Source: Monocercomonoides exilis PA203
Lineage: Eukaryota > Protista > Preaxostyla
Assembly: GCA_001643675.2 (NCBI GenBank)
Contig: LSRY02000019.1
Span: forward strand, 124,001-188,000
Reading direction: 5' to 3'
Length of the DNA stretch: 64,000 nt
Shown: piece by piece, positions 2,929 to 63,808 of the stretch
Position numbering within the stretch: position 1 is the stretch's first letter
How the letters are laid out: each line of letters begins with the position of its first letter
Translations under genes and position numbers: made by a program
Notes under the pieces: generated by a model
What the model saw: the letters and a program-made list of their open reading frames with translations, nothing else
What the model was told of the DNA's origin: nothing
The model's database searches: none

Positions 2929-3238
2929 CTTTATCAGTATTCATTTATAAAAAGCATAAGAAAATAGAATTCCTAGGATTTTTACGCTAATAAATAAAAT
3001 TCAAACATGAAACAGTTCGCAGTTTAAAATTAACGCGCCAATAGCTGGTAATAATTGTTTGATCGTTTGTTCGATCAATAAATCTATTATTTTAAAAAAA
3101 GAAAGAATTTTTTTTTATGAAAGGTATTGGCTCATGTTTTTGGATATTCGTCAATCCAAGAAGACTTTTGATAAAATTGTAACAAAATTGTAACTTTAAA
3201 CAAAAAATTTAAAAAGAATAAAAAAATTTTTTCTCATT

Positions 3239-12200: not shown

Positions 12201-13102
12201 TGATCATTTGCGTTGCTCATATTTCTTTCCCCTAACTTTTCATCTGAGTTTGCATTATTTGAGCCGACGTCATCTTTTCCCTGATTCTCGTTTGTTCTTT
12301 CTTCAGTCTTTACCGTGTTCCTTTGCTCTGTGAAAATTGTTCGTGGTCTTCCTCTCCTTCCTTTCTTTCGAGTTGGTTCGTCTGTTTTCTCATCTGATTG
12401 CCTTTTAGCAGTTTTACTCTTATTTCTCCTTTCCTCCATTAGTCTGTCTAATGCTTCAAATGCTTTTCTTTCTTCTTCTCTTTCTTTTTCTCTTTGAGCT
12501 TTCCTTGCAAGTTCTTCTTTCTCTAATTCTTCTTGTTTCCTTCGCTTTTCTTCTGCTAATTGGTTTTTTCTTTCTTGTTCTCGCTCTTTAATCCGTTGCT
12601 CTTCTCTTTCTAATGCAATCAATTTTTGAAGATTCTTTTGTTCTTCTGTCAAAAAAATAGTTTCTTGATGAGCAGGCAACGTGCGGTTCTGAAAGACAAG
12701 GGAATTTGCAGCAGCAGAAGATTGAGATTGAGAAGGGCTCTGAATTGTTGAAGCTGTAGCATCGCGGGATAAAGCTGATGGAAAATGAAACGAATGTGAC
12801 AAAAGTGCATGAGAAGTTGACATTGTCAGCGGTGATGGAGATTTTGTAAGCATAGAAAGTGGAGAAAAATAAGAGTCTATGCGAGACGTTGGGCGAGGAT
12901 TTGTTGCATTGCATGGAGGAGGCAGTTGAAAGCGATGAGAAGTTGAAAGAAATGCTTGAGGGAGTTCTGTTTGCGAAGAAGGGCGTGCCATTGGGTAAAG
13001 AGGTTGTGATGGGATTTGTTGTTGTGGAAAAAAACTTGAACGCGGTGAGCTTTGCTTTTGAAAATTCTGTGACGCCGCAGATCCTATTTGATTTTGTTGC
13101 AT
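3239..13102 (-). CDS. SWR1: SWR1/SRCAP/Domino SNF2-family ATPase (H2A.Z exchange)
   Basis: 3287-aa ORF. HSA-like helix (WSHLCSDV...[12 protein letters not shown]). ATPase lobe 1: [63 protein letters not shown]. Long insertion, then lobe 2: [40 protein letters not shown]. AT-hook-like GRP/RGR motifs. Confidence 0.95.
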   Translation of the reverse strand: [3287 protein letters not shown]

Positions 13103-25297: not shown

Positions 25298-25692
25298 ATA
25301 TTCAAAAGTTGAGAAAAATCAATTAAAGCAATGTGTGGAACAAAAGTCATAAAGCAAAACATTATGTCCCAAATAGATAATGATGTGAAAATAATCTTCA
25401 AAAATAAATTGAACATTGAGTCATTTTGAATAAGAAGTTCACTTAAAAAATACATGAATGTGTGTGTGATTATTTTAAAAATTATCTTTTTTTCAGAAAA
25501 AATTTTTTGTGTGAAAATATGTCTGGAGTCTTATTTAATGAACATTAAACAAATAACATTTGAATGCAAATATCCTTTCAAATGATAAACATCAATTCAA
25601 AAAATCAACACACTGAAAAAAGTTGAAATTTTCAAATATAATTTAACGTGTGATTTTGTCTGCTTCAAAAGTCACAAATTATTGAAAATATT

Positions 25693-26094
25693 GTCACTTT
25701 CCTAATAGGCGGACACTTCCCTGATGGCCGGATAGTAGCCTTTTCTCAGCAGCTAATGAACGTAGAATTTTGATTTTATCCCACATCAATCGTAAGGTGA
25801 ATATGAGTATATGAAGCATTCTGAGAATACTTCATTCTTGTTCATTCATTTTTTAAAAATAATTTTTGTTTTTCAGAGAAATTCGGAAAAACTAATTACT
25901 CCGTGTTTCTCCGAAAAACAAAAATTATTTTAAAAAAATGAATGAACAAGAATGAAGTATTCTCAGAATGCTTCATATACTCATATTCACCTTACGATTG
26001 ATGTGGGATAAAATCAAAATTCTACGTTCATTAGCTGCTGAGAAAAGGCTACTATCCGGCCATCAGGGAAGTGTCCGCCTATTAGGAAAGTGAC
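25693..26094. mobile_element. 402-bp fully palindromic foldback element with 4-bp TSD (TATT)
   Basis: Arms of about 195 bp (GTCACTTTCCTAATAGGCGGACAC...GTGTCCGCCTATTAGGAAAGTGAC) with about 4 mismatches near the centre and a loop of about 12 nt. TATT at 25689-25692 and 26095-26098. Confidence 0.9.
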
Positions 26095-26632
26095 TATTCC
26101 ATTATAAAAATTCTTCAAGTTATTCTTATGCGATGCACACAACCACTTTTTGAAGAGTTTATTTTTATTTTGTCGGAATAATAGAAAATATTGCTTTATC
26201 TTTCATCATAGATAAGTCACATTTTTGTAATGAAGAATCATTTTTAATGGATTTTCTATAGAAAAAGATTATTTCATAAAAATATCGAAATTTTTATTTT
26301 GTTAATCATTTTGGTATTTCTTTATCAAATACAAATAAACAATTTGTGCACTCTGTATTTGTGAGAAATCGGAAAAACTTTGAGTTTCATTTTTTCATGG
26401 TTGCAATCGAAACGTAAAGACAAAGTCATTTTAATATTTTTTCATAATTAAACTTTTTGCAATAAATACTCATTTTCATTTATTGATTAAAAAAATATGA
26501 ACAATATTTTTCGTTATCAAGTTTATTTTTAAAATTAAAAATAAAAATTGATGAATAAATATTTTTAAAAAAATAACTACTATATTGAATGTAAACTTTT
26601 TCAAATTTTCATTTTTCTTCAACTATTTCAAT

Positions 26633-38991: not shown

Positions 38992-41117
38992 TTAGCACTC
39001 TGCTTCGGGGAGAATAAACGTGCTGTCCTTTCTCATTTCAGTAAAGCTGGATGGGTACTTCAACGACCATCCATCTGCTAGCTCAATGACGCCTTTCTGC
39101 GAATCCGATGAAGCAGGCGTTGAAGATGAAGAGGATGATTGAGGTTGCTCTGATGGTGGAACAAGACTTGGGAATATCATTCCTCTTCCATGTATAGCAT
39201 CAGCTGACCTCATGACAATTTCTTCTTTCAGAGGATCTTCAAAGCAAAATTCACTAAACAGTTTTTCTGTGGCTGTTTATTAACAATTATTTATTTGAAT
39301 ATATGTGTTTAGAATTATGAAAAAAAAAAAGCACTTCAAACATGATCAATCTTCAATTTCAAACCTTTTTTATCCAGATTTGATTTGATGTCTTGAACGC
39401 GACCCAAAAAGCTCAAAACTGCGGGCTTCAATTTCTCTATCACGAGTTGGAACTTCTTCACTTTTTTCGCTGTTTTGGACGAACCTGACAAATTATCTTC
39501 CTTCTTTTCACCGTTCTCTTCTTCTTCTTCTTCTTCGATGATTAAAATCGAGCCATTTCTCTGGAAGTAGTGGAACATAACGGTTCTTGCCTTTTGGTGT
39601 GCTTGAACAAGAGCATACTTCAGGGAGACGATCATCGAGGCCAGCATCTGATAATGTGCAGCCATTGCCTCCTTCTGGCTAATAATGCCCTTTTCAAGAC
39701 AGTAAAACACGCCGTACATTCCAAACAGCTCTGCTCTCAGCTCTTCCAGCGCATTGTACTCTGATCCAATCTCTATCTCCGGGTTCACACTGCGCTTGGC
39801 CGGGTCCGTTGCTTGGCCCGTCGTGTGGCCGATTTCGTGGATCATCGAGTGGATGGTGCTTCCGATGGTAAGATGCTCCTCCAGGTCATGGAATATCTGC
39901 TTGGGGAAAAAGAGACGAGATATAAGATTCTTAGAGACCTTCTCCATGGTTGCGCCGGTGTTGACGTAAAACATGTTGACTGCCCCTAAATTCTTTTTCA
40001 GCCATTCATCGTTGGGCAAGCATTGAGCAACTGTCGTATACGGTGCCGTTGCATAATCTCCGGTCCACCTCACAACATCGACTGCACGCAAATGGAGATC
40101 TAAATCTCCTTTAATTTCCTTTCTGAAGCCATCAGATGGGGCTTCCCTTTCCATAATCGAAGCTTCTGTTCTCAGCCTTGAAACAAGTGAATCCAAAGTT
40201 GTGTTTTTCACCATTACAGAAGCAGATGGTGAACCCTTAATACTCTTCCAATCGTCCATATATACTTCAAGTGCAGTAGAAAGTACTAAATCGATCTTAT
40301 AGTCACTTTTAATCCATAGAGAATCAGCTACAAGTCGTGCTTCTTTGCTCCCAGTTTCCAATTCCAAAATCTTTGCATCCAAATACAAGCAAAAACTAAC
40401 ATTATCGCATTCTTTTCTGGCCATTCTTAATTTCTGTGCAATTGCTTGGCACTGAGTCCGATATTTTTGTTCAAAAGGAATTATTTCAATTTTCCCTTCA
40501 TTGCGTCGAATAAATGTGTTTGGCTGCTTTGCCGTCTCAGGAAGAGATTCAAATTCAGAATCGCTTAGATCTTTTGGATAATAGCATCCTTTATCGGAAA
40601 TAGTTACTAAATCAAAAAAGTAGGGTTTTAAAACATCTTGATCGAAAGTTGAAATTCCAACTTGACCTGATGATTTTTAAAAAAATATTATTCAATTATT
40701 ATAAAAAATTTTTTCTTTATAAAAAATATGTTAGAAAAGGATACTCATTATGTTCGTGCAACGGTCTGTTGGTATGTTCAGTAGATGATTTTTCTTTGGT
40801 ATTGAAGAAATAGGAGAGTTTTGCAACAAAAATATTGTTTTGTAGCTACGTAATGAAGAAAGCTCTTCCGGAGTAATATCGGGGCATTTCATCATTTTAT
40901 CAACTGATTTTAATATCATTGATGCATTTTCGTCTGACATATCAAGAAAAATTGAATTCATCAAATCAGCAGCATCGCATAAATATTTCAGTACAAGTAA
41001 TTCTTTTCCATTAAATGATGATAAATCAACTTCGCAGTTAGCAAATGCAGCATTAAATTCTTTCTCTCCTTTTTGTTGATATTGTACTCTTTCTTCGTCA
41101 CACCCAAGATTGTTCAT
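38992..41117 (-). CDS. Peptidase M49 (dipeptidyl peptidase III-like), pentapeptide HEXXH type (3 exons)
   Basis: Motifs GCYYPKDLSDSEFE, TVAQCLPND, HEIGH, NALEELRAEL. Introns 40667-40744 and 39273-39364 restore one frame. Start codon uncertain. Confidence 0.85.
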
Positions 41118-41480: not shown

Positions 41481-44309
41481 ATGGCTGTTAATCGTTCGTT
41501 ACTTATTAAAGAACTTCCCATTGGACTCCAAAAATCATTAGAGGACATTTCAATCGTGTGCGATAATAGCAATCATGGAATTCTTGACATAATTATTATT
41601 TTTTTTTTTAAATCGAGAAAAATGCATTCGAAAAAAAAATGGACGAGTTGGATAAAGCGAATTGTTGTTTTGTTCAATTGGAATTAGCTTCAACCGATGA
41701 GGATGTTCAATGTTTCAATGATTCGTATATATATATAATAATAACGACTTTTCTTTTCTTTTATCCATTAAATAAACTCATTGCCACAGGCTTCAAGCAT
41801 CCAAATAGACCTGAAGAAATCATGTCTCAAATTCATTAAAAAATTCAAAATGATCTCTTATGGATTTGCTGCTATCGAGTTAAATCAGATTTCAAAACAA
41901 AAGCTGATGGGCACAGAATGTTTTAGTGTCCCAACGAAAAGAAGGGATATGCATGCGGATGTTCAGGCAGAGAAACTTCAGCTGCAGTCAAACAACACAA
42001 ATGTGCATTGTTGTCAACAACGTTGGACTTTTGGATCAATAAAAAACAAAAAGAAGTTCGACAAACCATTATTTCTATTAAAGAGCACAACCAGTCTTTT
42101 AAAGACAACAAACAATTGACAGATCAATTTTTAGATTTAGTTTCCAGATGCAATATATCGTTCTTGTCAGCGGGGTCATCTGAGTTTAACTCATTTGTGA
42201 AGAGTTTGATTCAAAAGGCACAAACAAATCCGACTGCTGAATATACAGAAATATTTCCGTATTTATCAAAGTGGAAAATAAAAAGACTAATAAGCGAAAA
42301 GAAGGCAACAGCAATTCGAGAAAGATCCAGATTAATAAAGGACAAATACATAGCTTTGAAGATCGATGGAGGGAAAATCGTAAATAAATAGTGCATTATT
42401 ATTTCATATCTTATTCATGCAGAAAAATCAACTCCTGGATTTTGGAGCCTTTAACCAGCATGTCATTCTTCTGATGATTATAAAAATCTTGCTGAAATGT
42501 GCATCTCGGAGATTGCAAAATGCGGTGGTGAAGTCAGAAGCATTTGTAGTGACGGCTTGGCAGCTCAAAAAAAAGCATTTCAAGATTCATCACACAATTC
42601 TGATAGAGAAATCGATTTATTGAACTTTAATGTCAAACCTTTTCATGTTTATTGTTTTAATCATTTAATCAACTTAACAATCACACATTCTTTTCAAGAA
42701 GTCCCATTTCTTAAATCAATCAAGGATATTATTATTGAGTTCTCAAAATTATCAAGGAGCTCATCAAAACAACGGATGTTACCTACAAAATGCCCAACAT
42801 TCATACTTCCGAGATGGTTGTGCCTGACAGATATTTGCTTGTTCATAAGGAAAAACAGAGAAATTATATTGGAATCGAAGCTGATGGACAGCCAGAGTAT
42901 TATTAATGCAATTAAAGCGGAAATTTTGTTATTCCCTTTAAAAAAGTTGCATTTGTTTTTTGAAGATGACAACAGCAAGCTTGGAAATGTTTTTCCAAAA
43001 ATTCTGGAGGCAATGTCTTTTTTCAATAACCTTTTCGAATTAAGCCCTTTTCGTTCCGATCATTGGCATATTGCAATTGTGAACGTTTGGATATATCTGT
43101 TCAACTACACTTTGGAAGGCGAAAGATGGGATCTAATTGCACTCGCTTATGCATTAACACCAGAAGGAAAAAATAAACTTATCAGTGATGATTTTTGTCG
43201 TATGTTTTTTAATTCAGAAGAAACGAGAAAAGATAGTTTGTTCAAACATTTGAATATTCTCATAATTGATTGTTTCTTTCTTCCCCATTTTTGAACTCAA
43301 TAAACAACATTTCAACTGTTTTCTAGATCGAGCATCATCATCATCTGTTCCCTCATCATCACAGAATAAGGAAACATCTATTGGAAGGTGCTTTTCAAAA
43401 GAAAAAGAATCAACAGCTTTTCCCTTGTCTGTGAGAAGATTTAAAAAGGCATTATCAACGATTTTGAGAGACGAATCATCAACCGAGTATGTCCACCCGA
43501 GTTCGAACAAGCAACAAATTGAGGAAGAGCAAGATTCAGTAACATCATCATCGAAGCACATCCAGAAAGAAATTGAAAATCTCTTGTTAATTGTTTCACA
43601 ATTTGAGAAGAAAGAAATTTCTTATTCACATATGCGAGAAGAAGCTATTATTTCAGAAAAAGAAAATACAGCAGATTATCTTGGACTAACTGAGGCAGAG
43701 GAGCAATCAGAAAATGACGAATATGATGAAATATTAAATGATGAAGCTTCAACCCTTGTTGAAACAAGATCTTCTCTTATATCTTCTCAAGAAACGCTCA
43801 GTGACGAATCGGATTATCATGCCATAAGCGACTTCTACAAAGATGTTTCCCATGAAGACGAAGATGATGTGATTTTTGCAGGCACAAATAAAAAACTTCA
43901 AGTTATTCACGAAATTACAAAGCGGAAGGAAAATGAAGCTGTCGATTCAATTAGGACGTCAATTGCATCAAATTGGTATTTCAGAATATTTAAATCATTT
44001 AATTCTTTTATCAAAAATTCATTGGGGCAGTTAACTGAGGAAACTAGAGAAAAATTCGCATCGTTATTTAAAACTCACACACTTACTGCAACATCAGTTG
44101 GTGTCCTTGAGAGTTTACCAGTATACTACAGTCATATTGCATCGCTTGGTGAAGCGGAAACAGTTTATGTCAACATTTGTTTTTGCATTGCAACATCTCC
44201 TTGTAGCGAATCCGCCTGTGAACGACTTTTTTCAAGATTAAAGCGAATCTTCGGTGATCATAGACATTCGCTTTCCTTTGATTCGCTAAATTCGTTGCTT
44301 CTCTTGTGA
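41481..44309 (+). pseudogene. hAT transposase with in-frame stops and a spliceosomal intron
   Basis: Cys/His finger-like CPN...CGC...HKC, KIDGG, CSDG, CFNH (CxxH), PRW and C-terminal SESACERLFSRLKRIFGDHRHSL. Stops at 41837, 41924, 42389 and 42452. Intron 43236-43326 (GTTTGT...CTAG). Confidence 0.88.
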
Positions 44310-48219: not shown

Positions 48220-48459
48220 AGGTTATTCTTTTTGAAAAGTCGCAAATGTTTAATTTTCAAATAAATTAAAGATAACATATTTTGTTAAATATTTTGTTAA
48301 CAAATATGAAACCTCACAAATATGGAATCTATTTTTGGATAATGCTATTTCATACATTTTTTAGAAGATTCTTGAGTGAAAACAGAAATTTGAGCAAAAT
48401 ATGAAATATTTGATATATTTGAAAATTAAACATTTGCGACTTTTTTAAAAGAATTACCC
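48220..48459. mobile_element. MITE family B (about 240 bp, long TIR ...TTCTTTTTGAAAAGTCGCAAATGTTTAATTTTCAAATA)
   Basis: Inverted termini of more than 40 bp, ending GAATTACCC. Second diverged copy at 61640-61876. Confidence 0.8.
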
Positions 48460-49280: not shown

Positions 49281-49741
49281 ATTACTATCAAAATTTTTAT
49301 CAGAAAAACATGGATATCAATCCAGTGATGAAAATGATCATATGTTACGATTGACTTTATTCTTTAATAACAAAAGATTCATAAAAAAATATCACTTTCA
49401 AAGAAAAATATTTATTTACAGAAATTTTGTTATCATTCACGTTTTACAAAGAAATAATTTTCACCACGAAAGAAGACACGATTTCAAAAACAATCACGAA
49501 AAATACTGGTGAATAATAACAACAGCGGAATGAAAAAATACACGAATTTTCTTTTGCTTTTATTGTGGCAGTTGTGTTATGAGAAAATGAGGATAGATCT
49601 TTTTAATTTTGGTGAGTGGTGAAGATCCAATAACCAAGGAGAACCAAAATTTTTTTTCAAATAATTTTCGTTTTTGATATTTCTTTTGTTGTTAACCACA
49701 ACCCAAATGCATTCAAACTGGATAGAACTACATCGAATATT

Positions 49742-52700
49742 GGCATAGGTTCAAACGCGTTCCTTTTGCAATTTGCGTTTTAAAACCCTCAAATCATAAC
49801 AAATTAATAGATAATAATTATTTAAAAACTTTTTATGGACCGATTTTTTGAAAAAAATTTTTCTTGTTGAAAAAAATGATTTTTGAAAAATGACCCATAA
49901 AAACATGAATTTCATTGAAAAATATTTAAATTGTAAAGAAAACGTGATTTTTACATGTCCAATGTGTTTTTATTATAATATAAATATATTTTATTTGTTA
50001 ATTTTCATCATTAACAATAATGATCATAAAAAATTTTTTTATTAAATATTTTTGATCTAACCCACAATAAAATTTTTTTGTCTGGAAAAGTTGAATATGC
50101 TGTTTAAGATGAAATCGAACTCAATAGTTTGCCATCATTTCATTTTTATATATAAAATTTAACATATTATTATATGTGCACTTGTTTTATATTGAAAACA
50201 GCTTTTATTATCAGTGACACAAACGCATGCATTTTCACTTCCATGTTGTTAAGATGAAAGATTAAAATTTCAAAATTGGTAGCAATGGAACGCAAAAGGT
50301 ATTGTATGGTTCTTTTCATCAAATAAATATTTATTTTGCTATTTTCCTGCAAATATTTACTTGTTCTTTTGTATATTAATATTTTTTTGTATTAGGCTCG
50401 ATCATGGCATGCTTAAATAAATCAATGTTGCAAAATTAAACATTACTTACACAAAATAGCTCAATGTTGAGAAATAAAAACATGTACTAAATAAAAGTTT
50501 GGTTTTTTTTATCATTAAAAAAAGAATTGTTTGAATTTGATTTATTTAACTCTAACAGTGAATTTGATGTTGTGATATGTAGAAGCGAGGAAGAACCATG
50601 CCAAACGATGTAGAAATGGATGGAAAACACGGAAAAGGAAAGTGGAATGAAAACAATTCGGATTGATGGATCGACTGTTATTCGAGATTCATTCAACATG
50701 TTCAATTATCAGATCAAAAAGAGTGTAAAGATGGGAGAAGAGAATATGAAAGCGATATTGAATTTTGAAAAGGCAATTGGAAGTCAGCTGGACCATTACA
50801 TGGTGAATGATGATCATCTAGAATTGTCGAATATCCAACTCCAACTGAAATCTGGATTTGACAATTCAGCTAAAACGATTATTTCAAACAAAGGAGGAGA
50901 ATTGGTGATAAGTGAATGCTCATTCCGTTCAGAGGCTGGAGTGAACAATGGATTTGATTGTGTATTTGTGGATGTGATTGGAGGTAGTGTGGAAGTGAAT
51001 GATGAAAAATCATTCACACAAGAATGACTTGTTGGATGTTCGAGTTCGCTGACAATGAGGAGACTTTCATTTGCTGTGAAAGGTCAGTTGAATTCAAGGA
51101 GAAGTGCATTCATCCATTCAACATCAACACTCAGTGTGACGAACTGTTCAATCTCATTTAAAAGTGGGACATTAACAAATGGAAAGATAGGATACAGCAT
51201 CATTGAGATGGCAGGAGGGAATCTGGTTGTTGATGGATTTGTGATGGAAAGTGGAGTGACACAGAAGATGAATGAGAAATCGCCAATAATGATGACAAGT
51301 GGAGTTGAATTGGAGATATCAAACAGCAGAATGAGTGGAGTGGAAGTGATAGGGGTTGATAGGGGATGTTTGAATGTTGAAATGAAGGAAGGTGGAAACG
51401 TGGATATTGAAGAAAGCAATTTTTAATCAACATGCTCAGGTGGAAATGGAATGAAAGGAGGAGGGATGATGATATCAGTTGGAAGCGGAGGAATATTGAC
51501 AGTGAGTGGAGTGAATTTGTCAGAATGTGAAGTTCCATCAGAGGATGCTGAGAATGGAGGGAGAGGAATGGGAGGAGGGATGTTTGCTGAACTTGCCAAT
51601 CAAATGGGAACGTTTTCATTGGAGAGCATGACATTCAGTGAGTGCAATGCATGGAAAGGGAAGAATGTGTTTGCTTCTGGATGGAATCTGATAGAGATTG
51701 TGAACAAGGAGCACCTGAAATGGGAAATGAGTGAAGGGGAGTTGGGATCATTGGATGAGTTGTGTGGATGGGAGAGGAAGACAACAGGAGAGGATGGATA
51801 TGTGATTCCATTGGTTGTGTATTTGTGGGATAATTGGAGTGTGAATGGGTTTGTTTCGAGAGAGAAAGGAGGAGACTTCAGTGGTTGTGGGTATTCAGAA
51901 GCTCCATGTTCATCAGTTGATCACTTATTTTCTCTGAGATATGGTTCACTTGGAGAAGGGGAATCACACATCAACATTGTGGGATCAGGATTGCTTCAGA
52001 AAGCAATATCATTTTTATCATCATCATCATCAGATACACCAGTTGTGAAGATTGAAGGAGAGACAAATGGAACAGTTTTGAGGATTGAAGAAGAGAAGGA
52101 AAAAGATGGAGAAAATAGAGAGGCAATGGTTGCTTCAGAAGTGATCCTCTCATTTGTGAATGTTTCATTTGTTCTACCGAATGTGCTTGTTCATCATCTG
52201 GCATTCATCAAATCGTCGTCAGGAGATGGGGCACTTTCTGTGAGAAGCTGCTCATTTGTGAGTGAGGATGCTTCAAAAGAAACGAATTTCTGTTTGGTGA
52301 GAGTGGATGGAGGAAGCGTGGAGATCGAAGACTGTGCCCTGAAAGAATTCCATTTGTTGCAAGGATTTATGGAATTGTCCTCAGATGTGAAAGTGGCAGA
52401 TGTGATGAATCTGTCGATCAGTTACACGAGTGTTTCTGGAAGAAGTCTGATATCTATCAGTGAATCCGCTCTCTTATCAGTTAGATCATTGAAAGAAGCA
52501 ACAATGTTGAAAAACAAAGTGAATGTGGATGAAGATGGAATGCTATCGATGAGCGTGAACAGCTCATCTTTCACAAACATCACATGCAATTACAATAGAG
52601 CCGCAATTGTGAGTGCTTATTCATTTGAATGTGAAATGAGATGCTTGGTGGAAGGGTGTGTGATGACGAAGTGTCTGAGTGAGTGGAGCGAAGAGGGAGG

Positions 52701-54148
52701 AAGGATGAAAGTGAGTTTGAAGAGCAGAGGGAGTGAGTTGAGAGTGAGTGGCTGTCAGTTTGGGATGTGCATTTGTTCCATTGTGAAGGGGGAGAGGAGG
52801 AGGGCTGATGATTGATGCATCTGGCCTGGGTGAAACACAGACAGATACAGTAGATGCACCATTTTTGGGAATACTGATCGAGAGCACCAGATTCACAATG
52901 AATGATGCGTTTGTGGGGAAGGATGTGTTCATCCGGCGCAAGTGGATTGAAAAGCAGATCAATGAGAAGCTGTTCTCGCTGGACTTCAGCCAGGATGCTC
53001 TGAAGTCGAACAACTCGATTTGTGGAAGCGACGAAGAGAAAAGAGATATTGATCTAATCCCGCTGGTCACATTCTATTATGGCCAGCAGGTGTTTGTGGA
53101 AGCGAATGGGAGGGATATCAGACAGTGTGGAGAGCAGACGAATCCATGCAAAAGCATCAGCCATGGAGTGTCTCACATTCAAAAGGGGATCATGAATGTG
53201 ATTTTTATTGATGGAGAAGGGGACATTGGAGGAGAATGTGTGATGGGAGATGTGAGTGTGAAGCCAATGAAGAAGGTGAAGGCAACAATCCGTTTCAATG
53301 CAACTGTTCAAGAGATGGGAAATGAAGGGGCTGTGATTGTGTTTGTGAATGAGAGTGTGATGGAGAAGTGTTTGTTTGTGTTTGGAGAGGCATTTGAAGG
53401 GGTTGAGGAGAGTGCTTTGAAAGAAAAGGATGGGAGATTGGAGATTTCAGATTGCTTTTTCAGCTCGTCAGCAATGGATTTTGTGATGAAGAGCATGATT
53501 CTTCATGTGGAGAGAGGAGAGCTGAAGATGAGCGAAACATCATTCAGTGGAATTCATTCATCTGTGCCACTTCTGTCATTCTGTGGAGAATTGGGTGTGT
53601 CAATTGCTGAGACACGAATATCGAATATCGAGTGTGAGGGGGAAGTTGTGCGAGTTGGGGGAAAAGCGAAGGCAGAGATGAAGGAAGTGATGTTTGAGAA
53701 TATCTCAGTGGCTTCTGGAGGAAGCGTGATGAAGATGGATGGAGCTGAAAGGGGGTTGAGTGTGCTGAACTGTTCCTTTGCGAAATGTCGGAGCACAAAC
53801 AAGAAAGGAAAGATGATGAGGATATGTGAGTGTGTAGATATGAGAGTTAGATTGTGTGTGATTGATGGAGAGGAAGGAGATGAAAAAGAAGGAAAGCATG
53901 GGAATGAGAATAATGGAAGAGGTGAAGAGATTTGCAGATGGGATGGATCTCTTGTGGATGTAGTGAAAAGTTCTGTTTTGATGAAAGACACAACAATCTC
54001 GAATTCACCAGAAGGTGGAATAACTATAAGTGGAGAAAATATGTAGATGAAAGTCATAAACGTTTAAAATTATTTACTGAGACTTTTTCACTTTGCAGAA
54101 ATCACAATTGACAATTTTTCTTGTTGTTTATCGTAATACAATAACTAT
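49742..54148 (+). repeat. Left arm of giant inverted repeat (4407 bp)
   Basis: Mirror of 56105-60510. Paired ORF coordinates sum to 110252 (110253 beyond the 1-bp indel at about 52790). Confidence 0.97.
50558..54046 (+). pseudogene. Captured fragment of a multicopy Cys/Gly-rich, beta-helix-like surface protein gene (left copy, extra frameshift)
   Basis: Repeated CG....PC motifs (GCGYSEAPCSS, QCGEQTNPCKS), GGGMMI/GGGMF motifs. Stops at about 50610, 51025 and 51424; frameshift at about 52790; ends abruptly at ISGENM. Confidence 0.8.
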
Positions 54149-54201
54149 TTTCGATTTTTTTTTTATATATATAATGAGCGAATAAAAATAAAGATGATGT
54201 G

Positions 54202-55886
54202 TTATCGTGAAATTGGGAATTGTTGCGTTCCTTTGTTTAATGCATTTGTTTGACTTCTCAAAGTTTTTTGATTCATTATTGAATACAACTTTTTCTTTTC
54301 TTTTTTCTTCATCTCACAAATTTTATATTCTTTTTTTTCGCAAAAACTTTCTGTTTCTTTTTCTAAATTTGATGCAAGTTGGTTTTCATCTTTTTTGCAG
54401 AATCTTCCATTGCTTGACCTTTTTCTTTTTATTTTTCTTTTCCGTGGTTTTAAATCATTTACATCAAATTCAAAAATATCCTCATAACAGTCATTTGTTT
54501 TTTGTTCATCATTATCATCCATTTCGCTATTTTCCTCAGTATTTTGAAGCTTTGGAATGACGGCACAGCTTGAGCCTGATTCATCATTTTTTCATGTTTA
54601 ATGTTTTGTGCATTTTCATTTTCCTTGTCAGTTCTCTCCTTTTCTTCATCTTCTTTATCATCGAATAAATTGGAATGATTTTCATCATTTGATATGTCAT
54701 CTTTAGCATCATTGCCTTCATCCTCAGATTCGTCGATTAATCTTCTTTTCCCCTTTTCAGTAATCACTTTGGATCCTATTTTTTGTAATTTTTTCTTCTC
54801 CTTAAAGAAAGCATCAAGCTCGTTTTCATCCAATAATGTTGCATCTTCATCTTTTTTCTTCTTTTCTTCTTTTCTCAGAATGTATGATGATAACTTGAAC
54901 TTTCTTTCTTTTATTAATACCGTTTTCGTTTTAATTTCACATTTATTATAAGACTCCATGTAATTGTCAAAGTCCCTTTTTTTTATTTTAGAAATATCAT
55001 CGAGAAAACTGTAAACTGTTCCTTTATTATAAATTCTGTACTGAAATTCGTAGGTATATTCTTTTGTTTTTTCATAGGTTCTTCCTCTGATTGGGAGATG
55101 ATGTTTTAAATGTGACCACATGCTTTCTATTGTTTGTGAATGAATTGTTTTGTCAGCTGGATCAGAAAAATGCTCTGAATGATTAATACTGTAATGCGTA
55201 TATCCACATTGCTTAATTCCACTATAAGCAGACCATTTGTCACTGTAAATTTCCGAAGATATATCAATGTTTTTCTTAATGAAATATAACAATGTTTCTT
55301 CTGTTCTATCTGGGACAAATTCAAGTTTTAATTTTTGCGGCTTTCCTTCCACTTTTCTTTCAACTGCTCCCCACAGCCACTGCTGTTCTTTAACTCTTCC
55401 TACCCCATTTTTTCTTTTGTGAATCAGTGTTTCATCCATTTCAACTTTTCTGTTTTTTCCTATTTTTTCGGTATCAAGCGCTTCAAGATAACAGCAGATA
55501 TTACGTAATCTTTTGAAAAAGCTTGAGATTGTGTTCTTTGATAGTTTTGTTTCTATCACAACCTCATTCACAGAATGTTTGTACCAAAAGTGATAAAACA
55601 ATGTCATGACGTAGTAAGGCGATAAATTGAAATCCATAAACAAAGATTCATGATTCCAACTGTAAAGTTTTCCACACGACGAACATTTGAAAGTGTAATA
55701 ATCGCATTCTGGTTTTTTCATTGTCAGATTCATCTCTTTTTCGCATTTCCAGCATTTGAATGACTTTTTAATGCATCCCATCGATGACAAAATATCTAGA
55801 GCTAATTTATTATTCCCATTTGACATAACAAGAAATTCGCAAAAAGTTAATTTTTGAATATCTTCTTTGTTGTATTGAGTCTCCAT
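54202..55886 (-). CDS. Merlin transposase (DDE_Tnp_IS1595/ISXO2-like) with N-terminal zinc ribbon; probable 1-bp frameshift in the C-terminal tail
   Basis: CWKC...CSSC, VEMDET, WLWGAVER, VPDRTEETL, IYSDKWSAY, INHSEHF, HSQTIESMWSHLK. DDE core intact. One extra A in the run at 54587-54592 would join the ORF to 54202-54522, which has NLS-like KPRKRKIKRKR. Confidence 0.93.
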
Positions 55887-56104
55887 GTGACAGAAATTGG
55901 AAAATATATTTTTCAATTTAAATTATGATAGTCAAGTTATGGGAAATTTTTTTGTTACAAATATCGAAACTGCTTTGAAAGTATTAATTTTTCATTTAAA
56001 CCGTTAATTTTCAATATGCTATTTTCACAATATAATAATTAAAAATATTTATATGTTTTCAAAATAATACAAAACGAAATGTGAAATCATTTTAATAATC
56101 AAAT

Positions 56105-59100
56105 ATAGTTATTGTATTACGATAAACAACAAGAAAAATTGTCAATTGTGATTTCTGCAAAGTGAAAAAGTCTCAGTAAATAATTTTAAACGTTTATGAC
56201 TTTCATCTACATATTTTCTCCACTTATAGTTATTCCACCTTCTGGTGAATTCGAGATTGTTGTGTCTTTCATCAAAACAGAACTTTTCACTACATCCACA
56301 AGAGATCCATCCCATCTGCAAATCTCTTCACCTCTTCCATTATTCTCATTCCCATGCTTTCCTTCTTTTTCATCTCCTTCCTCTCCATCAATCACACACA
56401 ATCTAACTCTCATATCTACACACTCACATATCCTCATCATCTTTCCTTTCTTGTTTGTGCTCCGACATTTCGCAAAGGAACAGTTCAGCACACTCAACCC
56501 CCTTTCAGCTCCATCCATCTTCATCACGCTTCCTCCAGAAGCCACTGAGATATTCTCAAACATCACTTCCTTCATCTCTGCCTTCGCTTTTCCCCCAACT
56601 CGCACAACTTCCCCCTCACACTCGATATTCGATATTCGTGTCTCAGCAATTGACACACCCAATTCTCCACAGAATGACAGAAGTGGCACAGATGAATGAA
56701 TTCCACTGAATGATGTTTCGCTCATCTTCAGCTCTCCTCTCTCCACATGAAGAATCATGCTCTTCATCACAAAATCCATTGCTGACGAGCTGAAAAAGCA
56801 ATCTGAAATCTCCAATCTCCCATCCTTTTCTTTCAAAGCACTCTCCTCAACCCCTTCAAATGCCTCTCCAAACACAAACAAACACTTCTCCATCACACTC
56901 TCATTCACAAACACAATCACAGCCCCTTCATTTCCCATCTCTTGAACAGTTGCATTGAAACGGATTGTTGCCTTCACCTTCTTCATTGGCTTCACACTCA
57001 CATCTCCCATCACACATTCTCCTCCAATGTCCCCTTCTCCATCAATAAAAATCACATTCATGATCCCCTTTTGAATGTGAGACACTCCATGGCTGATGCT
57101 TTTGCATGGATTCGTCTGCTCTCCACACTGTCTGATATCCCTCCCATTCGCTTCCACAAACACCTGCTGGCCATAATAGAATGTGACCAGCGGGATTAGA
57201 TCAATATCTCTTTTCTCTTCGTCGCTTCCACAAATCGAGTTGTTCGACTTCAGAGCATCCTGGCTGAAGTCCAGCGAGAACAGCTTCTCATTGATCTGCT
57301 TTTCAATCCACTTGCGCCGGATGAACACATCCTTCCCCACAAACGCATCATTCATTGTGAATCTGGTGCTCTCGATCAGTATTCCCAAAAATGGTGCATC
57401 TACTGTATCTGTCTGTGTTTCACCCAGGCCAGATGCATCAATCATCAGCCCTCCTCCTCTCCCCTTCACAATGGAACAAATGCACATCCCAAACTGACAG
57501 CCACTCACTCTCAACTCACTCCCTCTGCTCTTCAAACTCACTTTCATCCTTCCTCCCTCTTCGCTCCACTCACTCAGACACTTCGTCATCACACACCCTT
57601 CCACCAAGCATCTCATTTCACATTCAAATGAATAAGCACTCACAATTGCGGCTCTATTGTAATTGCATGTGATGTTTGTGAAAGATGAGCTGTTCACGCT
57701 CATCGATAGCATTCCATCTTCATCCACATTCACTTTGTTTTTCAACATTGTTGCTTCTTTCAATGATCTAACTGATAAGAGAGCGGATTCACTGATAGAT
57801 ATCAGACTTCTTCCAGAAACACTCGTGTAACTGATCGACAGATTCATCACATCTGCCACTTTCACATCTGAGGACAATTCCATAAATCCTTGCAACAAAT
57901 GGAATTCTTTCAGGGCACAGTCTTCGATCTCCACGCTTCCTCCATCCACTCTCACCAAACAGAAATTCGTTTCTTTTGAAGCATCCTCACTCACAAATGA
58001 GCAGCTTCTCACAGAAAGTGCCCCATCTCCTGACGACGATTTGATGAATGCCAGATGATGAACAAGCACATTCGGTAGAACAAATGAAACATTCACAAAT
58101 GAGAGGATCACTTCTGAAGCAACCATTGCCTCTCTATTTTCTCCATCTTTTTCCTTCTCTTCTTCAATCCTCAAAACTGTTCCATTTGTCTCTCCTTCAA
58201 TCTTCACAACTGGTGTATCTGATGATGATGATGATAAAAATGATATTGCTTTCTGAAGCAATCCTGATCCCACAATGTTGATGTGTGATTCCCCTTCTCC
58301 AAGTGAACCATATCTCAGAGAAAATAAGTGATCAACTGATGAACATGGAGCTTCTGAATACCCACAACCACTGAAGTCTCCTCCTTTCTCTCTCGAAACA
58401 AACCCATTCACACTCCAATTATCCCACAAATACACAACCAATGGAATCACATATCCATCCTCTCCTGTTGTCTTCCTCTCCCATCCACACAACTCATCCA
58501 ATGATCCCAACTCCCCTTCACTCATTTCCCATTTCAGGTGCTCCTTGTTCACAATCTCTATCAGATTCCATCCAGAAGCAAACACATTCTTCCCTTTCCA
58601 TGCATTGCACTCACTGAATGTCATGCTCTCCAATGAAAACGTTCCCATTTGATTGGCAAGTTCAGCAAACATCCCTCCTCCCATTCCTCTCCCTCCATTC
58701 TCAGCATCCTCTGATGGAACTTCACATTCTGACAAATTCACTCCACTCACTGTCAATATTCCTCCGCTTCCAACTGATATCATCATCCCTCCTCCTTTCA
58801 TTCCATTTCCACCTGAGCATGTTGATTAAAAATTGCTTTCTTCAATATCCACATTTCCACCTTCCTTCATTTCAACATTCAAACATCCCCTATCAACCCC
58901 TATCACTTCCACTCCACTCATTCTGCTGTTTGATATCTCCAATTCAACTCCACTTGTCATCATTATTGGCGATTTCTCATTCATCTTCTGTGTCACTCCA
59001 CTTTCCATCACAAATCCATCAACAACCAGATTCCCTCCTGCCATCTCAATGATGCTGTATCCTATCTTTCCATTTGTTAATGTCCCACTTTTAAATGAGA

Positions 59101-60510
59101 TTGAACAGTTCGTCACACTGAGTGTTGATGTTGAATGGATGAATGCACTTCTCCTTGAATTCAACTGACCTTTCACAGCAAATGAAAGTCTCCTCATTGT
59201 CAGCGAACTCGAACATCCAACAAGTCATTCTTGTGTGAATGATTTTTCATCATTCACTTCCACACTACCTCCAATCACATCCACAAATACACAATCAAAT
59301 CCATTGTTCACTCCAGCCTCTGAACGGAATGAGCATTCACTTATCACCAATTCTCCTCCTTTGTTTGAAATAATCGTTTTAGCTGAATTGTCAAATCCAG
59401 ATTTCAGTTGGAGTTGGATATTCGACAATTCTAGATGATCATCATTCACCATGTAATGGTCCAGCTGACTTCCAATTGCCTTTTCAAAATTCAATATCGC
59501 TTTCATATTCTCTTCTCCCATCTTTACACTCTTTTTGATCTGATAATTGAACATGTTGAATGAATCTCGAATAACAGTCGATCCATCAATCCGAATTGTT
59601 TTCATTCCACTTTCCTTTTCCGTGTTTTCCATCCATTTCTACATCGTTTGGCATGGTTCTTCCTCGCTTCTACATATCACAACATCAAATTCACTGTTAG
59701 AGTTAAATAAATCAAATTCAAACAATTCTTTTTTTAATGATAAAAAAAACCAAACTTTTATTTAGTACATGTTTTTATTTCTCAACATTGAGCTATTTTG
59801 TGTAAGTAATGTTTAATTTTGCAACATTGATTTATTTAAGCATGCCATGATCGAGCCTAATACAAAAAAATATTAATATACAAAAGAACAAGTAAATATT
59901 TGCAGGAAAATAGCAAAATAAATATTTATTTGATGAAAAGAACCATACAATACCTTTTGCGTTCCATTGCTACCAATTTTGAAATTTTAATCTTTCATCT
60001 TAACAACATGGAAGTGAAAATGCATGCGTTTGTGTCACTGATAATAAAAGCTGTTTTCAATATAAAACAAGTGCACATATAATAATATGTTAAATTTTAT
60101 ATATAAAAATGAAATGATGGCAAACTATTGAGTTCGATTTCATCTTAAACAGCATATTCAACTTTTCCAGACAAAAAAATTTTATTGTGGGTTAGATCAA
60201 AAATATTTAATAAAAAAATTTTTTATGATCATTATTGTTAATGATGAAAATTAACAAATAAAATATATTTATATTATAATAAAAACACATTGGACATGTA
60301 AAAATCACGTTTTCTTTACAATTTAAATATTTTTCAATGAAATTCATGTTTTTATGGGTCATTTTTCAAAAATCATTTTTTTCAACAAGAAAAATTTTTT
60401 TCAAAAAATCGGTCCATAAAAAGTTTTTAAATAATTATTATCTATTAATTTGTTATGATTTGAGGGTTTTAAAACGCAAATTGCAAAAGGAACGCGTTTG
60501 AACCTATGCC
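56105..60510 (-). repeat. Right arm of giant inverted repeat (4406 bp)
   Basis: Reverse complement of the left arm. Differences seen: G5 vs G4 run (about 52790/57462) and C/T at 51399/58853. Confidence 0.97.
56207..59694 (-). pseudogene. Captured surface-protein gene fragment (right copy; retains an 864-aa ORF at 56207-58801)
   Basis: Same sequence and same 5' stops as the left copy, but without the G-run frameshift. Confidence 0.8.
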
Positions 60511-61373
60511 CGAATATTATCAATATCTTTTATTTTCACATTTTTTGATCCGCAGACATTTTTGCTTGTTTTTCATTCATTTTTCATCGCATATAATCAC
60601 AGTGTTGAAAATATATAATCACATTTTTTTTATGAATCATTTTTTCATTGAAAAATCGTCTTTTAGATCAAAATTTTCAAATTTTCACTTTTTCAAAATT
60701 AAGATGAAATAATTCTGAATAATATGTATTAATAATAAAAAATGTTTTCGAAAGTGAAAATAGCGTTTTAATGAAGTATTTTCAAAAATAAAAAATTTAA
60801 CCCAATATTTATTAATTTATTTATATATTTTTATTTTTATTTTCTGTGTAAAGCAGCATCAGATATTATCACAACCGGATGAAGTCACAAAAAGTTGAGT
60901 GAAATCCGATGTGATTATTTCCGGTTTAGACTGCACTGCTCCGTAATACTCTAAACCAACATTTAATTCTTTCTGAGTTTGTTTTATTTATTGAAACCAA
61001 AAACCATTATAAAAACTGCAAGAAACAAAACCTATTTGTAATGAAAAAGAGCATTAGATATTTTACGGAAAGAAGTTCACTTTTCAAGAAGCCAATGAAA
61101 TCTTGGGTATGAATAATTCTTTACCGAAACCATTTTTTGTATGTCAATATGAAACGACCTATCTCGGGATGAAACTATCTTTTCGTCATAACTTAGTCTT
61201 TTCGATTTATTCCAATATTGTTACAGAACTATTTTTTTCTTTCACGAAAGAAAATGCTTTTCTTAATGAACGGAACAAAAAACAAAACGACGGGATCAAT
61301 TTATTTTTCTGAATCGAAAATAATTCATGAAATATTACATCGTTTGTCGTTGAAATTAGAAATAAGAAGATAT

Positions 61374-61629
61374 TGGTAATTATTTTTGAAATCATAAATT
61401 TTTTTGATGTGTTGATTTTTCAATTGTTGTTTGTCATTGAATAGAGATTTTGTATTTTTATGAATAATTTCATCAAAACCATTTCAAAAACAAATGAATA
61501 AGCTTATACTAGAATGAAGATATTCCTTATTAATGTTTTAACTTTCCAATGTTCTTTAGTTAATTTTCAAATGAAATTTTCGAACAGAAATTTTTGAAAG
61601 AAAAAATATGATTTCAAAAATAATCGCAC
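61374..61629. mobile_element. MITE family A copy (256 bp)
   Basis: tggtaattatttttgaaatcata ... tatgatttcaaaaataatcgcac. ATAT on the left flank. Same length as 25042-25297. Confidence 0.75.
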
Positions 61630-61639
61630 ATAATAAGTT

Positions 61640-61876
61640 TGATTATTTTTGAAAAGTCGCAAATGTTTAATTTTCAAGTAAATCAAAAATTTAATATTTT
61701 GCTAAATATTTTGTTAACACACATCTTTAATCACTAATACAAAATCTTTTTCTGGATGATGCTGTTTCGGACATTCCAAAGTAGGTTCGTGAGCGGAAAC
61801 AAAATTTTAAGCAAAATATGAAATTTTTGATTTATTTGAAAATTAAACATTTGCGACTTTTCAAAAAGAATTACCC
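61640..61876. mobile_element. MITE family B copy
   Basis: tttttgaaaagtcgcaaatgtttaattttcaa ... ttgaaaattaaacatttgcgacttttcaaaaagaattaccc, followed by ATAT. Colinear with 48220-48459. Confidence 0.8.
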
Positions 61877-62552
61877 ATATTATTAATTATTTATTGATAT
61901 TTATAATTTTAAAAAAAATTAAAGTCAAATCGAGGCATAAAAAAACCTGAAGAAGTAACCATAATCAGAAAAACCGAGCAAACAAATAATAAAAATGGAA
62001 AAAGAAAAATTAGTTATCTTCACTGCTTTTTTTCATTGGCGATGATTTCATCGGTTGAAAAATTTCGTTGTTTCGAATGTTCGTTGCACATGTTCTCTAT
62101 AAGTGAGGCACTTCTAATTCTTTTTATTCTTTCTCTGGAAAAAGCATTCGATTCTGACTTTTTTTCTTATAGCTTTTCTATCTCAAATTGATTCAAAAAA
62201 ATATATAGCTTCTCAAATAATCTATCATCTTCACACAAATCATATGCCTGAATATTTTGATTTCTCAGCCAAACTGCAATTTCGACATCTAACTTTGCAT
62301 CATCCAAATTATTTCTGTTCCTATTTGCACATTGCTTCCACTGCCTTTTAATTCTTCCGAAAAACCATCAACAGGAATCCGTTTCTTTGCCAATCTTTCA
62401 TTAAATGCAATTTCTTCTATCGTTTCAACATTTTTGATTGGTGTTATGACTTCAATTCTGTCAATAGCACCTTGATATCCTCTGTCTCCCATGACTTTCT
62501 AATGTTTAATTCCTTCATCCAACCCATATTTTTCTCTTTCGTATTCTGATAT

Positions 62553-62820
62553 GGGGGAAAATACGGACTTTCAAGCTTTTTTTGCACAAAGCAAGAAAAA
62601 ATTGCTTCACTCATAACTTTATTTTTGTTTCTCAGATTTCAAAACAAATTTTATTTTCAAATCCGTAAACAGGCATCGTTGAAATTAAATCATCAAGTTT
62701 TCCAATATTTCACGAATGTCAAAAAATGGACACATTTTTATTGTGTTTTTTGATCTTAAAAAGTCAATGAAAAGTGCATTATTTTTTTCTGAAAATGCTT
62801 GAAGCAAAATATTTTTCCCC
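62553..62820. mobile_element. MITE family C (268 bp, GGGGGAAAATA...TATTTTTCCCC) inserted in the transposase pseudogene
   Basis: Imperfect TIRs with ATAT on both flanks. Removing the element plus one ATAT restores the frame LEYLHI|SEYEREKYG...MGDRGY. Confidence 0.85.
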
Positions 62821-63358
62821 ATATATGTAAATATTCTAACAACGGCTGCAAGTCTCGTTTGAACAATGAGAAATCATGGATGCGACACTCTACAACTTTC
62901 GAAGCAAACAATGCTTCAAAAGGATAGCAAGCAGCAACTGCAACCTGGATTTTTAATCCATAAACTTTCTTATGCCCATCGCAGAGCAACTTCTGATTTT
63001 CAATACTGCTAGCTTGGTTGTCTGTTCTTATTGACGTTGCATCTACAAGTAGTGCAAATGTACCAAAAGATTCGTCTGTATCAGAATATTTACGTCTTCT
63101 TTTCTCCATGTTCATTTTTAACAAAACTTTTTACAGGAGTGGATGCATATGAATTATTGCATCAGAAATTATGTGGCTGCTTCTGTAAAACAAAAGCCCA
63201 ATTCTTGTTTGTGTTGTTCCAGAAGACAGCCATTCGATGAAATAAAGTATTTTGTCAGTAAGCGATAAGGAACCTTTTGGTCCTTTTTTCGGAGTCTGGC
63301 TTGTTTCGTTTTCTTGTTCGCAAATGATGCTGAATATTTGTTTTTCAGTTTATTTATA

Positions 63359-63808
63359 CAGTCTAAACCGGATATAATCACATCGGTTTTTGCACAACTT
63401 TTTGTGACTATATCCGATTGTGATTATACACGATGCTGTTTAACACAGGAAAAATTAAAAATAAATTTTTAAAATAATTAAAATTGGGTAGATTTTTTTA
63501 TTTTTGGAAATTCTTCACAAAAACACATTTTTCAATTAAAATAACAATTTTTTATGTTTGATTATGTTATTTTGACTTATTTAAACAAAATTTTGAAAAA
63601 GCGAAAAATCGGATTTTTTGATCAAAAAATCGATTTTTCATTGAAAAAATCACCCATAATAATAAAAACTGTGATTATATATTTGCAGCCCTGTGATTAT
63701 ATACGATGGAAAATGAATGAAAAACAAGCAAAAAATGTCGGTGCATGGAAAAATGTGACTATAGGCGAATGTGATTATATTCGACGTGATTATATCCGGT
63801 TTAGACTG
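63359..63808. mobile_element. pogo/Tc1-mariner-type MITE (450 bp, TA TSD)
   Basis: Perfect 23-bp TIR CAGTCTAAACCGGATATAATCAC. TA at 63357-63358 and 63809-63810. Internal GTGATTATA repeats. Confidence 0.9.

Follow-up and report, generated by a model that had tools for sequence, protein, structure and literature searches.

The window, a 64,000-nucleotide stretch of a Monocercomonoides exilis contig, contains a Merlin DNA transposon of 10,769 bp at positions 49742-60510 (C13:173742-184510 in contig coordinates), which confirms the observation of the original prediction. Positions below are those of the window, and features are on the plus strand unless stated otherwise. The element begins with GGCATAGG at 49742, starting with GG, and ends with its reverse complement at 60510. 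The 8-bp TSD CGAATATT lies directly outside both ends (49734-49741 and 60511-60518), and the predicted GG...CC termini and perfect TSD are thus borne out. The left arm (49742-54149, 4,408 bp) is repeated in inverted orientation as the right arm (56104-60510, minus strand, 4,407 bp), on the other side of a unique core (54150-56103). The core measures 1,954 bp and not the 1956 bp given originally. Inverted repeat makes up 81.9% of the element, as predicted (about 82%). The AT-rich terminal part of the left arm (49742-50534, 793 bp) is element-specific, starts with GG and constitutes the family TIR, with 85-96% identity to about 25 sister ends. The inner end of the arm is an element-specific spacer of 106 bp (54044-54149). 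These lengths match the about 800 bp of repeat outside the cargo and about 100 bp inside it that had been proposed. A search of the terminal 819 bp of the arm for direct repeats revealed no such family, hence no tandem repeats in this part of the TIR.

The two arms are 99.95% identical over 4.4 kb. They differ by one substitution (51399, a C, opposite 58853) and by a homopolymer indel, the left arm having one more G at 52788. A reversed-pattern control gave 0 matches; this result and the identity of the arms over 4.4 kb exclude chance. When the element and one TSD copy are taken out, the TIR of an older transposon is restored, and this site with its single TSD copy aligns, free of gaps, with the partner TIR that remains intact near 63780. 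The TSD and the reconstructed empty site indicate that the element moved as a unit, in agreement with the earlier view that it is mobile.

The only ORF of the core (54459-55886, minus strand, 475 aa as assembled) encodes a Merlin/IS1595 transposase. It matches PF12762 (DDE_Tnp_IS1595) with E=1.7e-21 and 77 bits (cutoff, 27). The catalytic residues Asp151 (55434-55436), Asp216 (55239-55241) and Glu254 (55125-55127) align with the DDE triad of an IS1595-type protein, and N-terminal CxxC pairs are also present. The Merlin assignment is upheld by the domain, the triad, the GG ends and the 8-bp TSD. The description of the core as containing only a Merlin transposase with an intact DDE core requires one correction: compared with two sister copies, there is a frameshift near codon 432-436 (near 54592), which truncates the low-complexity tail and leaves the DDE core intact. 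The dN/dS ratio is 0.18 against copy C16a and 0.12 against copy C16b, and judged by these values the transposase lineage is under purifying selection. A protein search with the transposase returned only two distant IS1595-type matches, and the protein is absent from the M. exilis proteins in the database searched.

Cargo and host paralogs

The cargo spans approximately 50535-54043, as delimited by the extent of host homology. Of the proposal that about 3.5 kb of each arm is a fragment of a host surface-protein gene, the host origin stands and the single gene needs correction: the cargo appears to be chimeric, combining two ectodomain pieces from two subfamilies of a receptor tyrosine-kinase-like family, with later patches. 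Piece B (50535-50989) corresponds to about 130 codons of a subfamily B receptor-kinase ectodomain and has 75-81% amino acid identity to P0038, P0043 and P0053. Piece A (50989-54043) corresponds to about 950 codons of a predicted β-helix ectodomain of subfamily A, and is a mosaic of host patches. As a whole, the cargo shares 55-81% amino acid identity with parts of M. exilis proteins of 1,600-1,900 residues that contain TM and PK_Tyr_Ser-Thr regions, which rules out a novel element-encoded ORF unrelated to the host. The cargo itself lacks both the membrane anchor (TM) and the kinase. A Pfam search of the cargo was blank and a fold search returned right-handed β-helix proteins only, with low TM-scores; we therefore do not claim an enzymatic function.

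Both arms contain an in-frame TGA (51025-51027, mirrored at 59225-59227) and an in-frame TAA (51424-51426, mirrored at 58826-58828), which are Trp and Ser, respectively, in the C16 sister. An apparent stop at codon 496 in the cargo comparison proved to be an alignment artefact. The right arm, which overlaps gene model MONOS_3978, retains 864 open codons (58801-56207, minus strand) collinear with the transposase. Longer open frames are found in C16a (1,074 codons) and C48 (1,022 codons); most cargo copies have stops or deletions. The cargo dN/dS of 0.36-0.55 fits selection as well, and the less diverged part of the cargo is not significantly more neutral than the converted part (p=0.09). We regard the cargo as most probably a passenger.

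Along the cargo, the closest partner outside the element family shifts (C14/C11/C41, C2, C18, C20). A patch of about 270 bp (52147-52410) is 98% identical to loci on C18 and 84% identical to the sister element. A reciprocal test gave 98% identity to the C18 loci and 84-86% to C5 for the present copy, and 96% to the C5 loci and 85-86% to C18 for C16a. The cores of these two copies are 96% alike; their divergence is 14.8% in cargo positions 1249-3150 versus 4.2% in the core (p=4e-28). The patches, which differ between copies with such similar cores, indicate gene conversion, most likely from host to element. For the C18, C5 and C20 host loci, the direction of conversion, gene integrity and absence of transposon ends are read from coordinates and identities only.

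Sister copies and family history

The search for further copies suggested by the original prediction yielded about 25, recognised by paired ends, and a perfect 8-bp TSD is present in 12 of the 19 inspected. Left and right ends pair within the copy in 18/19 cases, though the copies differ from each other. Smaller copies have TIRs of 335-818 bp, and sisters of 3.5-5.4 kb have no transposase. Five family copies contain the present transposase lineage, and in all five the cargo adjoins the transposase. There is a second mirrored element of 10.6 kb (C16:~1369300-1379900), whose core is 83% identical to ours and whose arms are 99.8% alike (1 kb compared). The cargo boundaries are identical in the copies compared, and one copy, on C12, has the mirrored junction in common with ours (76% identity). 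Non-autonomous sisters contain a single cargo copy and an unrelated inner right end of ~600 bp; none of 30 transposase loci has this short right end next to it. Inverted identity in the C49 copy extends 300 bp or more into the flanks, and that copy has no TSD left; in C16a it continues across the transposase and into a nested element.

The earlier proposal that cargo was captured on one side and copied to the other fits the one-cargo sisters, but this copy is not where the copying took place. That the C12 copy has the same junction at 76% identity implies that the mirrored layout is old and inherited. This rules out a recent single capture mirrored here, and the near-identity of the arms reflects continuing homogenisation instead. 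A Tn10-like composite of two complete small Merlins is ruled out for this copy, as the inner arm ends have no TIR.

Capture and arm copying are supported, and we consider the following overall history likely. Between its transposase and its left end, an ancestral element would have picked up ectodomain sequence of receptor kinases, and so have gained the chimeric cargo now seen across the family. Homologous repair starting in the shared terminal repeat may then have overwritten the right end with the whole left arm (end, cargo and spacer), as proposed for TIR extension in Galileo. This would have been a single ancient event, with the mirrored form transposing ever since; we infer the starting form, having found no transposase copy that still has the short right end. 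The arms of each copy would overwrite one another, so that every mutation, stop and patch appears in both. Host paralog clusters would patch the cargo by ectopic gene conversion and could thereby keep it ORF-like in the absence of selection on the element. The non-autonomous copies with one cargo, and the foldback MITEs of 1.74 kb, would be deletion products.

Could the second arm have been made or homogenised by a nanopore fold-back chimera or polishing collapse? The assembly is a Canu/ONT assembly with ten rounds of Pilon polishing (PMC8767320), our evidence consists of read contigs, and the additional G at 52788, missing from contigs whose depth is about twice that of a single copy, probably reflects an error. 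However, the flanks are unique and different, the direct TSD rebuilds an older TIR, the 2-kb core is unique, and diverged copies on other contigs have the identical layout. Contigs joining flank to arm and arm to core occur in several runs, one from 2016, and include both left junctions. Both alleles of the arm substitution at 51399 are present at depths of about 37 and 40, compared with 28-47 for unique parts; copy-specific arm stretches have depths of 60-77, contig depth being only indicative. The rebuilt empty site, the two alleles and the depths mostly dispose of an artefact, which we regard as very unlikely.

The two biological alternatives concern the cargo. It could be a working gene for a secreted or truncated β-helix protein, or a source of hairpin RNA (for RNAi against receptors or as a shield for the element), with mirroring kept by selection. 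Its constant position next to the transposase, the long open frames in two copies, a dN/dS of about 0.4, four Piwi/Argonaute loci in the genome and the dsRNA that convergent 3.5-kb arms could form are all compatible with this idea. Against it, most copies are disrupted, ours by two stops, there is no sign of fixed element-specific sequence, patches being exchanged for host versions, and just 6-7% of sequence words are present in RNA runs; we find this alternative improbable. The element could also have spread receptor sequence and seeded or diversified kinase clusters, with conversion from element to host or both ways. The 98% and 96% patches are common to contig-specific clusters, and unclassified repeats overlap kinases across the genome (PMC8767320). 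But the missing TM and kinase regions, the start of non-element matches at the chimera junction without element ends or spacer, and the fact that no single cluster matches the whole cargo make such a source role unlikely, as does the disparity between about 25 elements and 332 kinases (PMC6759080). With cargo that is mostly broken and has the same boundaries, and TIR-less relatives that lack the element's junction, the suggestion that the element helps to explain, or drives, the expansion of the receptor family is not supported. Under the history of ancient capture and host patching, the element probably borrows from this family rather than having built it.

Relation to known elements and implications

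The IS1595 domain, DDE triad, 5'-GG ends and 8-bp TSD (8-9 bp in Merlin) agree with the Merlin superfamily (IS1595/IS1016-related), for which the available text of PMC8101967 describes seven families in the same organism. There, Merlin TIRs are 24-462 bp, and 23-29 bp for most M. exilis families, with inner borders called unclear. The 4,408-bp TIR with host cargo falls outside 24-462 bp, which is a descriptive range and not a classification criterion. That text makes no mention of cargo or kilobase arms in Merlin, and our literature search, which covered sources other than subscription journals and Repbase, found no cargo-bearing or kilobase-arm Merlins.

Very long inverted arms that make up most of the element (82% here) are a feature of foldback-like transposons such as Galileo and FB. 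Drosophila FB-NOF has kilobase inverted arms around a coding core, but its arms are internally repetitive and non-coding, and its core is not a Merlin transposase. In Galileo (P superfamily) and foldback-like elements, TIRs are lengthened by copying internal sequence from end to end, and conversion creates chimeric copies (PMC3573991). Galileo TIRs reach about 1.26 kb, are longest in copies without transposase, recruit element spacer and contain tandem repeats (PMC3573991), whereas here a 4.4-kb arm without detected internal repeats has recruited a host gene and the transposase is kept. Pack-MULEs and Pack-TIRs also carry chimeric host gene fragments between TIRs with a TSD, multiplied by transposition, and in MULEs acquired sequence can become part of extended TIRs (PMC3310237, PMC8277862). 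They are non-autonomous MULE, hAT or Tc1/mariner elements (PMC3310237, PMC8277862), and PMC8277862 does not mention Merlin. In the present element, by contrast, cargo and transposase travel together, the cargo occurs twice, and host paralogs probably serve as templates that renew it; the IS1595 domain and 8-bp TSD differ from the Mutator-type transposase and ends and the 9-11 bp TSD of Pack-MULEs.

With this element, the range of TIR lengths known in Merlin grows about tenfold; it is a DNA transposon that has a transposase and arms consisting mostly of host gene. In M. exilis, part of the unclassified repeats overlapping kinases is transposon cargo, as are gene models MONOS_3978, 17547, 17554 and 16463, and dating insertions by near-identical TIRs fails in this genome. 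Kinase expansion is not explained by the Merlin element. We consider it doubtful, though conceivable, that the element acts as a mobile, self-homogenising shuttle that carries receptor ectodomain patches from one kinase cluster to another by two-way conversion, and/or that its convergent arms yield a 3.5-kb hairpin RNA by which Argonaute regulates the largest host gene family. The reciprocal C18 and C5 patches allow conversion between a transposon and a multigene family to be tested cleanly, and gene capture, TIR extension with homogenisation, and ectopic conversion with host paralogs come together in one traceable family.

Structure and setting of the C13 element

The Merlin element on contig C13 of the M. 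exilis assembly (G000) spans 49742-60510 (G000:C13:173742-184510; 10,769 bp). Its termini are GGCATAGG at the start and the reverse complement at the end, each immediately flanked by the target site duplication (TSD) CGAATATT. The left arm (49742-54149) and right arm (56104-60510) make up 81.9% of the element and enclose a core of 1,954 bp; a single substitution (51399) and an extra G in a G homopolymer (52788) are all that separates them. The element is inserted into the left terminal inverted repeat (TIR) of a decayed DDE_Tnp_4-type transposon. With the element and one TSD copy removed, the site aligns without gaps to the older transposon's intact other TIR, whereas retaining both copies requires a 7-bp gap; thus, the TSD is real. 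Ends, arms, TSD and reconstructed empty site bear out the original prediction of a giant mirrored-arm element with an 8-bp TSD, and the observed structure is real and accurately described.

Read evidence came from Logan contigs over 49350-55300 (four runs, all from one sample). The left flank-arm junction is present, reaching only 25 bp into the arm, as is the arm-core junction (two runs, 31 bp on the arm side); none of the Logan contigs matching this interval crosses both arms. Depth in these contigs is indicative only: each allele of the arm SNP occurs at approximately single-copy depth, and the arm stretches specific to this copy are covered roughly twice as deeply. Since contigs without the additional G at 52788 reach roughly two-copy depth, this G was probably introduced in assembly, leaving a single site at which the arms differ. 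That the structure as a whole is an assembly artefact we consider very improbable.

The sole ORF in the core (55886-54459, minus strand) encodes a 475-residue transposase matching PF12762, with N-terminal CxxC pairs and D151/D216/E254. The protein extends by another ~90 codons, in another frame, in two sister copies; the C13 frameshift near codon 432-436, within the acidic/basic tail, is either a true lesion or a homopolymer error. The transposase is under selection, with a dN/dS of 0.18 against C16a and 0.12 against C16b (two sister copies on contig C16), which indicates that the lineage has been active. Every defining Merlin feature tested is present. The only departure is TIR length, which lies above the range given in PMC8101967 (24-462 bp, and 23-29 bp in most M. 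exilis families). Pack-TIR elements work alike, but the C13 element retains its transposase; Galileo also works alike, but the C13 arms are host-gene-derived and lack tandem repeats. No cargo-bearing or kilobase-arm Merlin was found in the literature searched, most subscription journals and Repbase being outside the search.

The decayed host transposon (~49710-63800) is PIF/Harbinger- or ISL2EU-like, with imperfect ~400-bp TIRs, DDE_Tnp_4/DDE_Tnp_1 remnants (62289-63124, minus strand) and a small foldback (61630-61883). A related foldback with 104-bp arms lies at 48221-48458, and another at 25690-26097 (198-bp arms, 97%, 12-bp loop). Elsewhere in the window, an uninterrupted 3,287-residue ORF (3239-13102, minus strand) has SNF2 and Helicase_C domains ~1,400 residues apart in a SWR1/INO80-like layout. 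A broken hAT-like transposase (42497-44309, plus strand) has a weak C-terminal Dimer_Tnp_hAT match, and a 362-residue ORF (39336-40424, minus strand) matches MPTase-PolyVal zincin weakly, below the threshold (E=6.5e-4).

Sister copies and arm-to-arm copying

In the nanopore assembly (82.3 Mb, 101 contigs; PMC8767320), the terminal 18-mer occurs 51 times, almost always in facing pairs (control, 0), and 12 of the 19 copies read have a perfect 8-bp TSD. The family comprises 1.74-kb foldback MITEs with ~800-bp arms, 3.5-5.4-kb copies with a single cargo and no transposase, and large copies bearing transposase. The inner 600 bp of the right end of the one-cargo copies is unrelated to the left arm. 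Among the large copies, C16b (~10.6 kb) has a core 83% identical to that of C13 and cargo on both sides; its arms are 99.8% alike across the 1 kb compared and include a transmembrane-coding piece. C16a is 20.4 kb long with arms of 7,171 bp, and in C16a and C59 the mirrored part comprises the cargo and all or part of the transposase. The C12 and C13 copies share the junction of mirrored arm and transposase 3' end (76% identity). These mirrored sisters indicate that the layout is a heritable family trait and no accident of the C13 locus.

Two 5.4-kb copies on contig C1 (G000:C1:817245-822642 and 847013-852408) are 99.95% identical, in opposite orientation and 24 kb apart; only one has a TSD. An 8.5-kb copy (G000:C32:1051969-1060448) has the ends typical of the family and a TSD of 8 bp, but its transposase is a distant Merlin type (30% amino acid identity) lying between 1.7-kb internal inverted arms that contain 30-bp tandem repeats. 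A more distant Merlin lineage (~70% DNA identity) likewise has inverted arms that are almost identical, with sequence resembling receptor cytoplasmic regions next to the transposase.

A tree built from the first 330 bp pairs a copy's own left and right ends as sisters in 18 of 19 cases, although different copies diverge by several percent. The C49 copy (G000:C49:550012-554300) lies in the middle of a perfect palindrome larger than the copy itself: inverted identity extends at least 300 bp beyond both ends, and no TSD is left. In C16a, inverted identity passes through the transposase into a nested Merlin, the target site being mirrored rather than duplicated. Together, these patterns indicate that arm-to-arm copying happens in place, heedless of element boundaries. 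The same mechanism has been proposed for Galileo TIR extension (PMC3573991), but the Merlin scale is larger. The nested Merlin belongs to another family (G000:C16:1003764-1011583; 7,820 bp; ends GGCAAAGG); its arms are ~860-930 bp long, and it carries a transposase of its own as well as the cytoplasmic/kinase portion of a receptor gene (74-82% amino acid identity).

Cargo and exchange with host genes

Host homology in the C13 left arm runs from ~50535 to 54043. The C16a cargo is a single open frame of 1,074 codons and is chimeric: residues 1-130 share 75-81% identity with one group of M. exilis proteins, and residues 126-1074 share 45-73% with a different group, DNA matches breaking at the same point (~50989). 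All homologues are M. exilis proteins; full-length relatives are 1,600-1,900 residues long, contain a transmembrane segment and match PK_Tyr_Ser-Thr at the C-terminus, which supports the original proposal that the arms carry host-derived sequence. The cargo ends short of the membrane segment. Its predicted structure is almost wholly β-strand (pLDDT 72), with right-handed β-helix proteins as top structural matches. The C13 cargo has two in-frame stops, each in both arms. One, the codon 138 TGA (51025), also occurs in two diverged sisters (C6:333118 and C34:538117), so it is either old or was spread between elements by conversion.

The cargo is also a mosaic. The C13 and C16a cores are 95.8% identical, compared with 85.2% for arm positions 1249-3150 (p=4e-28). 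C13 segment 52147-52410 shares 94-98% identity with six loci on contig C18 and 84% with C16a; for the corresponding C16a segment, identity is 94-96% with seven loci on contig C5 and 85-86% with C18. The top non-element partner changes along the C13 cargo. No family ends were found at the C18, C5 and other cargo-matching host loci among the matches listed. These identities are most simply read as the result of host clusters converting each element patch by patch, followed by arm-to-arm copying; the direction, from host to element, is likewise inferred.

Origin of the mirrored arms

The full-length relatives belong to the largest family in the genome, 332 kinases (PMC6759080), and it had been suggested that the element could help to explain this expansion. 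Our results do not support this: conversion appears to run from host to element, and we regard the element as an unlikely source of the kinases. A functional cargo, or putative hairpin RNA from the arms, seems equally unlikely. Four Piwi loci in the genome favour it, and the cargo dN/dS is 0.36-0.55, a value that host-to-element conversion would explain as imported from selected host genes. A two-way shuttle or a hairpin RNA regulator, taken together, is doubtful, if slightly less so. We consider it likely that the ancestor was asymmetric, its cargo and transposase lying in that order between a left end and a short right end, that a single old event copied the left arm over the right end, and that the cargo is a passenger.
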